From positions 1,240,001 to 1,304,000 of the forward strand of contig NW_025964113.1 of the NCBI RefSeq assembly GCF_023055435.1: a stretch of DNA of 64,000 bases. The letters run 5' to 3'. The translations under genes and the position numbers were made by a program. This document shows, one piece after another, positions 58,301 through 61,300 of the stretch. This DNA is from Haliotis rufescens (lineage: Eukaryota). Each line of letters opens with the position of its first letter. The first letter of the stretch is position 1. A model generated the notes under the pieces. It had not been told where the DNA came from. It worked only from the letters and a program-made list of their open reading frames with translations, and did no database searches.

Positions 58301-61300
58301 CGCAATCTTTTTATCTAACAGTTGTAATGTATGCACTTGTTTAATTTATTGATTGTTTTTGTTGTGTATTTGATGTGCTGGGGATTTGATTTGTCTGTGT
58401 ATATCAGTTCATTTAATGCATATTTTACTCTAATACGCAGCTCATCTAGAACTCTGCATGGTATTGGTAATATTGCATTCTTTGAGGTATTAGTTCAAGC
58501 CATGATAATACATGTGTATATTCATTCATAATCCTAGTTAGACGTTTGACATTTCACTGATATAATTCCTGAAAACACCCTTGCTACACAGTGATTGTTT
58601 TGTATGACACAGCTGTGGTGATGACGCCCACCCGTGAGCTGGCACTACAGATCTCATCGGAATGTAAGAAATTCTCCAGAACCATGGGACTGAGGTGCGT
58701 GTGCGTGTATGGCGGAACGGGAATATCGGAACAGATCGCGGAGTTGAAAAGAGGCTGCGAGATGATCGTTTGCACACCAGGGAGAATGATTGACATGTTG
58801 GCTGCCAATAATGGTGGGTATATTAGTAATAAGGTAGCTTTGTTTTTCAGCGCGGCATGTGCTTATGTAGGTCTGTTCTCATCCTCTGATTGTGTGCATT
58901 TACCGTGTTTATGTATATGTATAGATTTAAAATATAAAACTGACATTTTTTATGACATGTCATTGTTTACATGTCACGTCATTGTTTTAAATTTGTTTGA
59001 TCATGAGCTTGATTTTCTCATAGCTGTCAGGTTTATGCGCTCCAAAGTGAACATAATGATGCGACAGGATAGGCATGTTTTCAACCAATTTCGTTTTGTG
59101 GAATTGAAATAATTTTTGTCATTATTGGTTATGTTTGTGAATCTCTTAATTCCTAAAAACAAATTGTTCGGTATACACACAATGATTCGCGGATTGATTG
59201 TGCTCCCAATCATAAATGAAATGTTTTAAGGCTTATTTAAACAAATAGGTATTTTAAGGTAGTAGGTAAATGTGTTTGGTATTTAATTTGGTATTGAGTA
59301 ATTGTAGAATCTAATTGAGTCACTGTCACTTGAAACTAGGTAATAAACTACCCACTTGTCATGCACTGTGATCAGATTAATATGTCATTAGTTAGGACTG
59401 GGATGAGTCCAAATTTACTAGCCGGGTACCCACCCCCGTATTACCCAACCCTACCTGGGTACCCGCTGTAGGTCTCGAGAGTTGGGTACATAGTGTCTGA
59501 TTGGGAATAGTTTGACCACAGCCCTGGCAAAAACTATTTACATACACGTATAAAACGATCAGGTCAGGCATACACTGAAGTTTACTGAGGTTTTATCTTT
59601 ATTCAAGTATATAAAATCAGAAGGAATAGGTGCATAGTCAGAAAGAAATGCGAACATCATTCACTTGTAGTGTAACCACATTGAGTCCTATATAATTTTT
59701 GTCATTAAACAATATATCACGTGACTAACAACGGGTCCGGTAGTACTGTGGGTACCCGGGTCCTACTCAGGACCCACCCGACCCGAGTACCCGAGTTACC
59801 CATCCCAGCCCTAATGCTTAGGCAGGTCATAGTTTCTATAAATATAAAATGTCAATGCCGAGAATAACCCATCCTTATTATCTGCTGAACCAGATTCCCT
59901 GGGCATTAAAGGCAAAATAACGGTGAAAGTTTTATGAATGAATCACTGAAAATCAGCGACGACACCAGGGGTTTACGAAAAATGTCAGCCATTTTGATTG
60001 GCAATGCAGTTTGCAGAGAGTCTGATTGGAGATTATGTTTTCTTAAATGTCTGCTACAGAGATGTTAATGTCTTTGATAGGCATTAGAGACACAGGATAT
60101 ATGGACGTCAACTGTATTTTGTATGTACTTTTCGAGGCTACTTCTCATCATCAGGCTAGAAGCAGCCTTGAAATGTTATGCATAAAGACTACAGAAGTGG
60201 AATGTTTAGTGGCTACTCGTGTTGATTGTTGTCAGTATTATGTATGGAGATACTGGATATATGTCCTCAATGTCCTTGAGCAAACTCGAGACTAATACAT
60301 CACCTTTTTGTTTCCAGGTGTCATGGTATGATCATGATGATGATTTTTATTGCTTGTCATGCCTGTAGATGAAACTTTTGTTTCTTTTGTTGGCTTCTGT
60401 ACATTAAGAGATGTCGTGTCTCATTTAACATTGTTTCATGTTTCAAAGGCAGGTAAGTTTGATAGGAAAAGTTGTCATGTATAATTGTCTGAATTGCAAA
60501 GCAAAGCCATATCTAATTTTGTGTATGTGTACATGTAGACAGTGTTAGCATTGAGAAATGCTGGCCAGAAGACACCTGTTTACAGTGGCAGATTATGTCT
60601 GGAGTGTCACATCAGGCTGTGAGGGGTTGTTAGCCAAGTAGTACATGGCCATGAAGAGTTGTGTCCCTTAGCTCTGCCAGGATCTGGTGGCTGTTGGTTT
60701 TCAAATCCAAGAGTCACCTGGATAAGGTTCCTTGGTTTGTGAGCAGTGTTCTCATGTTGGTGGGTCTCACCAAAGTGATAAACCTCCATGACCAACATCA
60801 CTTTGGTGCTTTCGTCCCACACTTAGCTAACATGTCATGGTATGACTGAAATATTGTTCAAGGTGGCACCAAACCAAACTCACTCATCAGTTGAGTATGG
60901 ACCAACTCATTGCTTTGATCTGTGAATCTCTGTTCACAACGTGTTGTGCAGGCTGCAAAGATGTAGCTGCAATATCATTATGATCAGATCTTTTGCTCCG
61001 ATATGATATGATATGATATGAACTTTCAAATCAGTGTATGGACAATGGAGCAAAACATTCAGAGCACATATTTGACTTTTGCATCTGGAAAATGAACATA
61101 AACAGGTAGTTCAGAATGGAATATAATAAACTGCTGAGGGCATATTCATGTTCTGTAAGTTCATTTGTTAAGATCAAACTTTCATTGAGACTGGATTGTC
61201 AAAGTTCATACAGTTTTCACCTGACTTGATCTCCTATTCAGAGTTTCACAGATCTGGACACAGAGCACGAGATCTGACTGTAATGATATTGAATGTAGCT

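Follow-up and report, generated by a model that had tools for sequence, protein, structure and literature searches.

Does the gene for the spliceosomal helicase DDX46/Prp5 in the abalone Haliotis rufescens carry a poison exon, that is, an intronic cassette whose inclusion introduces premature termination codons (PTCs) and directs the message to nonsense-mediated decay (NMD)? The question is raised by a segment of 135 nucleotides (nt) at positions 60318-60452 of the + strand, located in one intron of this gene within a window of 64,000 nt (contig NW_025964113.1, positions 1,240,001 to 1,304,000), which is the whole stretch of DNA that was analysed and to which the positions below refer unless another locus is named. 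An original prediction, made from the sequence alone, proposed that inclusion of this segment senses DDX46 activity and closes a feedback loop. The sampled transcripts show position 58813 spliced straight to 62189, and unspliced RNA that crosses the segment without a break. Our preferred reading of the segment, held with somewhat better than even confidence, is that of an intronic pseudo-exon present in one copy or, at most, of a cryptic exon that is normally repressed.

The DDX46 orthologue occupies the + strand of the window from ~47.4 kb to the window end, starts with an RS-rich exon, and was identified exon by exon, with no joined coding model. Among PDB entries, the exon at 49983-50213 matches human DDX46 alone (E-value 4.8e-8). 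The exon upstream of the intron in question (the TPGR exon, 58613-58813, + strand) matches the human DDX46 chains 6y50_p and 7evo_E with an E-value of 2e-33 and 56 of 65 residues identical, the runner-up DEAD-box proteins being DBP2 (2.9e-18) and DDX42 (7.2e-16); its translation ends in 14 residues (letters not shown) plus a G, at ...GCC AAT AAT G|GTGGGT, where the bar marks the splice boundary. The downstream exon, which carries the DEAD motif (62189-62271, + strand), starts at CCAG|GC CGT GTT ACC, is translated as the completed (G) followed by 27 residues (letters not shown), and ends at ...GAA CCT CAG|GTGAGA. Between the two lies a GT..AG intron of phase 1 and 3,375 nt (58814-62188, + strand), whose joint 58813>62189 is present in contigs of three of four RNA contig runs (X1, X9 and X14, introduced below), so that the original prediction was right about the gene, the phase and the size of the host intron.

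All splice signals that had been claimed for the segment are present. A branch-point-like GACTAAT (60290-60296, + strand), which matches YTRAY and has its A at 60295, 22 nt before the G of the acceptor AG, is followed by a pyrimidine tract and a CAG acceptor (60297-60317, + strand) with 14 of 17 pyrimidines at -20..-4, no AG in -14..-3 and the boundary CAG|G at 60317/60318. The donor GTAAGT (60453-60458, + strand) stands directly after CAG, and the resulting CAG|GTAAGT agrees with MAG|GTRAGT at 7/7 positions. Thus, by sequence consensus alone, usable 3' and 5' splice sites surround the candidate cassette. By comparison, the constitutive sites of the flanking exons are weaker: the donor scores 5/7, and the acceptors have 9/17 and 12/17 pyrimidines and no YTRAY in -45..-15.

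Translation also bears out the predicted 135-nt body with four stops in five codons, as in the DDX46 frame the segment reads G V M V stop S stop stop stop, with TGA at codons 5, 7, 8 and 9. These codons lie more than ~50 nt upstream of the later junctions (60452/62189 and the one after 62271), a placement expected to elicit NMD. The other two frames also carry stops (three and one), and the TGA cluster sits within an (ATG/TGA)n-like run; because stops occur in all three frames of AT-rich intron sequence, the in-frame TGAs add no evidence of function. With 35% GC and 44% T, compared with 38% GC for the intron and 51-52% for the flanking exons, the composition of the segment is intron-like and lacks an exon-like bias.

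The evidence from transcripts is based on contigs. For this material 24 runs were listed, none recorded as RNA except three small-RNA libraries, which are useless for junctions. Fourteen small contig sets were labelled 'RNA?'; of the words in a 7.7-kb stretch that is mostly intronic, they contain a fraction of 0.32-0.57. Four contig-set runs, one per organism label, were placed on 58400-62400: X1 (organism A), X9 (C), X11 (D) and X14 (E). The canonical joint 58813>62189, which skips the 3,375 nt between GT and AG, was found in X1, X9 and X14; it rests on one contig per run, whose shorter arm measures 28 nt, slightly short of the 31-nt rule. Since the exon at 58613-58813 is single copy in the genome, this joint derives from RNA, and a processed retrocopy as its origin was ruled out. 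The run X11 has no canonical joint, and its contig passes from spliced upstream exons directly into the intron.

The junctions that inclusion would create, 58813/60318 and 60452/62189, for which a search had been proposed with the original prediction, did not appear: of the 37 joints of the four contig-set runs, in which rare forms are lost, 15 are listed, and none of these ends at 60318 or starts from 60452. Both boundaries of the segment are crossed by one unbroken contig in every run (X1 60060-61322, X9 59786-61020, X11 59751-61005 and X14 59772-61019). At the real exon ends the contigs of X1, X9 and X14 break within at most 30 nt (58785/58814 and 62188/62217), and X11 has no such break. 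As a retained contig with an inclusion junction would force a similar break at 60318 and 60452, the unbroken contigs mean that inclusion is not detectable, within a clear limit: the assembler prunes low-coverage branches and NMD would thin the isoform, so that low inclusion could escape.

Two observations on the same contig sets concern the intron as a whole. It is covered from end to end in all four sets, with a mean word depth of 16-33 versus 31-94 for exon contigs. This coverage, together with the read-through in X11, could reflect a detained or slowly removed intron, although the runs had been chosen for containing this stretch. At the dispersed repeats of 59338-60007 and 62286-62700, in and just after the intron, the summed contig depth reaches thousands, and chimeric 'joints' are numerous in these sets.

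The segment is single copy, in line with its original description as non-repetitive. The 361 nt around it have one match in the 1.33-Gb genome, and a sensitive blastn search of the segment against 264 kb (200 kb of further sequence together with the remainder of the window) yielded no significant hit, the best having an E-value of 0.076 over 21 nt. Three neighbouring stretches used as controls, two inside the intron and one just past the downstream exon, gave 5, 8 and 56 hits. Contig depth across the segment is single-copy-like, and flanking repeats reach thousands. A dispersed repeat or exonised transposon is ruled out by the single genome match, by the blastn comparison with the controls and by contig depth. 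The unique stretch is bounded on the left by a dispersed repeat of the same intron (59338-60007, no strand assigned), with a summed contig depth in the thousands and 5 blastn hits in the 264-kb sample, and on the right by an older dispersed repeat (60638-60886, no strand assigned), with 8 blastn hits at 69-81% identity across 60544-60945 and raised contig depth.

How often such a pair of sites arises by chance was estimated with a fixed rule, in which the donor agrees with MAG|GTRAGT at 7/7 positions, the acceptor has at least 13/17 pyrimidines, Y at -3, no upstream AG and a YTRAY motif, and the two are 40-300 nt apart. The 64-kb window contains one 7/7 donor per strand, 14 top-class acceptors on the + strand and 13 on the other, and exactly one pair, which is the candidate. 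In another 20 stretches of 10 kb each from this contig (400,000 strand-bases) there are 9 donors, 71 acceptors and no pair, where the marginals predict 0.42. By arithmetic from these marginals, such pairs are expected at ~1 per Mb-strand, ~0.0035 per intron of this size and ~2,800 per 1.33-Gb genome. The pair is therefore beyond chance locally and not genome-wide; a chance case within some splicing gene is to be expected.

Conservation within the genus was assessed from the same four runs. At ~2% of intron places the three other organisms depart from the window, and a stretch of 280 nt (60286-60565, + strand) that includes the segment is free of substitutions among the places listed for organisms A, C, D and E, the nearest variable places being 60285 and 60566. 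The test region comprised the two non-repeated parts of the intron in which each run has one contig (58815-59337 and 60008-60543); for places with one contig, the variant listing appears to be complete up to 60808. Of the variable places listed, 20 fall in these parts and none between 60285 and 60566. The probability that none of the 20 would fall in the 169-nt interval 60290-60458 is 0.031; it is 0.10 for the local 536 nt alone and 0.098 when indels are included. The lack of substitutions in 60286-60565 is thus not significant (p 0.03-0.10) and a hint at most. Organisms C and D (X9 and X11) share a 1-nt deletion in a T-run inside the segment, at 60381, and lack 9 nt at 60276-60284, directly before the branch motif.

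For comparison beyond the genus, metagenomes were scanned with the translation of the upstream exon as query, which yielded 80 loci (L022-L101) of 65-82% identity from varied eukaryotes. The two exons are contiguous in 31 of these loci, separated by an intron at the identical place and phase in 26, and in the remaining 23 no downstream exon is found on the contig. The phase-1 intron follows the first base of a Gly codon, AAN(N/S)G|RVTN, and ranges from 50 to 3,413 nt. Its identical place in 26 of 80 loci marks the intron as ancient, with a position that is old and widely kept. Neither the candidate nor the whole abalone intron gave any blastn alignment to the 80 loci. Within the genus, the conservation of the segment is thus not significantly above intron background, and among these loci no intron is alignable with that of abalone.

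In a second animal clade, this intron contains a conserved element. The introns of L046, L054, L060, L068, L077 and L084 cannot otherwise be aligned, except for the close pair L054/L068, and share an island of ~55 nt with 85-93% identity, which is as conserved as the coding exons, whereas the rest of those introns does not align. In the comparison of L046 with the others, the island is the only conserved block that has no match to an exon of the abalone window, besides two blocks downstream of the part covered by the window, which are probably later exons. A profile of the island recovers L071, L081, L082, L037, L072 and L057, always on the + strand and downstream of the exon match. The island lies at L046:12304-12362, L068:2527-2591, L054:2469-2533, L077:3883-3942, L084:2257-2319, L060:1599-1658, L071:2520-2584, L081:3009-3067, L082:3686-3734 and L037:2175-2220. 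It reads ...GCGTCCCACAG|GTGGCGTGTATTGC...GAATGTTGYAG, with a conserved GCYG|GTAY ~100 nt further on, so that its ends resemble splice sites, CCCACAG|GTGGCGTGTA ... GCYG|GTAY, 98-127 nt apart.

The island is non-coding, as shown by one-base indels in its core. Read as a cassette of 98-127 nt, it would cause a frameshift in 7 of 10 loci; in the other 3, with lengths divisible by three, it would bring in-frame stops. As an estimated ~93% of random segments of this size are equally unproductive, only the conservation of the island counts as evidence. With respect to structure, 11 pairs were predicted for the island, with no compensatory changes, and no Rfam family was found at it. Partial copies of the acceptor-bearing part are arranged in tandem at L082:3297-3734, L057:4174-4252 and L072:1208-1429; in L082 and L057 the units are ~48 nt long, and several CCCACAG|GTGGCG sites stand in a row. 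In L046, the 5' part of the TPGR exon occurs a second time, as a partial copy (9824-9917) ~60 nt upstream of the real exon (9979-10204).

The island and the abalone segment share the intron and the strand, are of similar length (98-127 versus 135 nt), start with CAG|GTG(T/G)C, contain the 10-mer TATTGCTTGT and would both be unproductive if included; they differ in that the island is strongly conserved and has weaker splice signals. The island profile detects nothing at the abalone candidate, and equally good chance hits occur elsewhere. A first, looser alignment test of the segment against the island gave p values of 0.012 and 0.032. In a cleaner test with the conserved core from nine loci, comparison with random windows gave p 0.05, and comparison with windows that were anchored on AGG, AGGT or CAGGT gave p 0.05-0.12. 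Homology between the two is not supported, the likeness being at chance level, and on the present alignments we regard the island as a separate lead rather than an orthologue of the abalone segment.

Taken as a pseudo-exon or repressed cryptic exon, the segment combines consensus-like sites with a lack of use in mature mRNA, within the limits of the contig data. Its T-rich, intron-like interior may lack the features needed for exon definition, or may bind repressors; inclusion of the segment, should it occur, would through the TGAs expose the message to NMD, as with any intronic insert. Several facts weigh against this reading. The candidate's signals far exceed the flanking constitutive sites in strength, and the logic of exon definition would expect such signals to be recognised; the pair is locally very unlikely, at 0.0035 per intron; 280 nt carry no listed substitution in four runs, and variable places resume right at the branch motif; in a second animal clade this DDX46 intron holds a cassette-like island that is conserved; and the RNA test is a weak one, as contigs drop rare variants, NMD would deplete the isoform and 15 of 37 joints are listed. 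Much of this also bears on the possibility, which we hold to be real if clearly the less probable, that a minority of DDX46 pre-mRNAs include 60318-60452 and that the TGAs lead to NMD and lower DDX46 output, with or without feedback. Such a genuine poison cassette would account for the consensus branch motif, tract, acceptor and perfect donor around a single-copy segment of ideal exon length, for PTCs placed far upstream of later exon junctions, and for the stretch without listed substitutions. It would also agree with a conserved island in the second clade that would disrupt the frame or add stops in all ten loci, and with the behaviour of other core spliceosome genes, such as SNRPB with its regulatory alternative exon (in the excerpt of PMC4109005). 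Against it stand the contigs, which show no such junction among those listed in four sets and no branching of the graph at either boundary, as well as the conservation p of 0.03-0.10, the intron-like composition and the chance-level likeness to the island. In addition, a full-text literature search for DDX46 with poison exon, nonsense-mediated or autoregulation found no paper describing a DDX46 poison exon and none with such a term in its title, supplementary catalogues, which may list DDX46, being outside that search; in the excerpts of PMC13164374 and PMC8980049, DDX46 is merely listed among genes with altered splicing. The poison-exon interpretation is a legitimate reading of the signals that these contigs neither prove nor refute, and the evidence leans negative. 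A role of the segment in setting the DDX46 dose would be conjecture, and autoregulation pure inference.

Other readings fare worse. It is rather unlikely that an unproductive cassette recurs, perhaps from an ancestral state, in the TPGR-DEAD intron of DDX46 in invertebrates, with the abalone segment and the second-clade island as two versions of it, and that inclusion sets the helicase dose, perhaps through branch-site competition in which high DDX46 activity favours the cassette. More doubtful still is a DDX46-specific sensor, in which a cassette with a consensus branch site would compete with a constitutive acceptor that has a weak one, and high proofreading activity would favour the cassette in a negative loop. 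The contrast in signals fits this proposal, as the cassette has a consensus branch motif and neither constitutive acceptor has YTRAY in -45..-15; moreover, in the excerpts of PMC4281567 and PMC5238730, Prp5 proofreads branch-site pairing and changes in its partners alter the use of suboptimal branch sites. The use of the exon itself was not seen in the contig sets, however, and a response to DDX46 level would be a further step. A consensus branch site should be the least dependent on Prp5/DDX46 proofreading and sits awkwardly with the feedback idea, so that a loop might work only by competition with the weak constitutive acceptor. A very low probability is also assigned to the view that the block 60286-60565 is under constraint of another kind, for instance as a structured RNA or a binding platform within the intron, with incidental splice signals. 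The block does extend 113 nt beyond the donor, and the fold is mildly more stable than that of shuffled sequences (z -2.1; 5 of 200 shuffles are equally good), but the lack of substitutions is not significant and Rfam gave no match at E-values up to 1 in 59900-60900; at the gathering threshold, the only Rfam matches in 46000-64000 are two weak tRNA-like hits elsewhere. The least likely explanation, to which we give hardly any credence, is recursive splicing with a recursive-splicing exon (RS-exon), by which a first splicing step would use the AG|GT at 60317/60318 and a second would complete removal of the intron and take the segment with it. In the RS-exon model, a strong downstream donor can define the RS-exon, and the segment resembles such cases in the juxtaposition of GT with the acceptor (CAG|GTGTCA) and in its strong donor. 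It differs in the short intron, of merely 3.4 kb, and in the weak 5' site that would be re-formed: this site would have to out-compete the RS-exon donor, whereas ATG|GTGTCA scores 3/7 and the downstream donor 7/7, so the segment would be kept, not removed. Contigs cannot show the intermediates of such a process.

Among known systems, the favoured pseudo-exon reading places the segment with the pseudo-exons and repressed cryptic exons of animals (general background in the excerpt of PMC2095810), which are likewise intronic, exon-sized and T-rich inside, have consensus-like flanking sites and are not seen spliced into mRNA. The abalone segment differs from them by its unusually perfect signals, its donor being the sole 7/7 donor on the + strand of 64 kb, and the silencing step would here have to be assumed. 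SR-protein genes carry poison exons. The regulatory PTC exon of SNRPB (SmB/B'; in the excerpt of PMC4109005) is alike in being an intronic cassette of a spliceosome-component gene whose inclusion brings stops. The exons of SNRPB and of the SR proteins are seen in transcripts, respond to protein level and are highly conserved, whereas inclusion of the abalone segment is not seen in contigs and its conservation is not significant.

Some further features of the gene and its host intron were recorded. The two tRNA-like Rfam matches lie in DDX46 introns on the + strand, at 54384-54442 and 56850-56906 (33.7 and 30.1 bits), and are probably heads of tRNA-derived short interspersed nuclear elements. 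A (CACTCACTCACT)n-like microsatellite at 61225-61416, which translates as THSLTHSL, is a place where reads are cut. Relative to the window, organisms C, D and E have a 10-nt insertion, GATATGATAT, at 60999.

As it stands, the abalone segment illustrates that textbook-perfect intronic splice signals are not evidence of use. Should it prove to be a functional poison exon, DDX46/Prp5 would rank with SNRPB and the SR proteins as spliceosome components that set their own dose via unproductive splicing; this would provide a mollusc case, where such loops are hardly studied, and a natural reporter for branch-site proofreading. The more solid by-product of the analysis is the conserved non-coding island in the same intron of a second clade, which makes the question of a regulated unproductive DDX46 isoform a worthwhile one.

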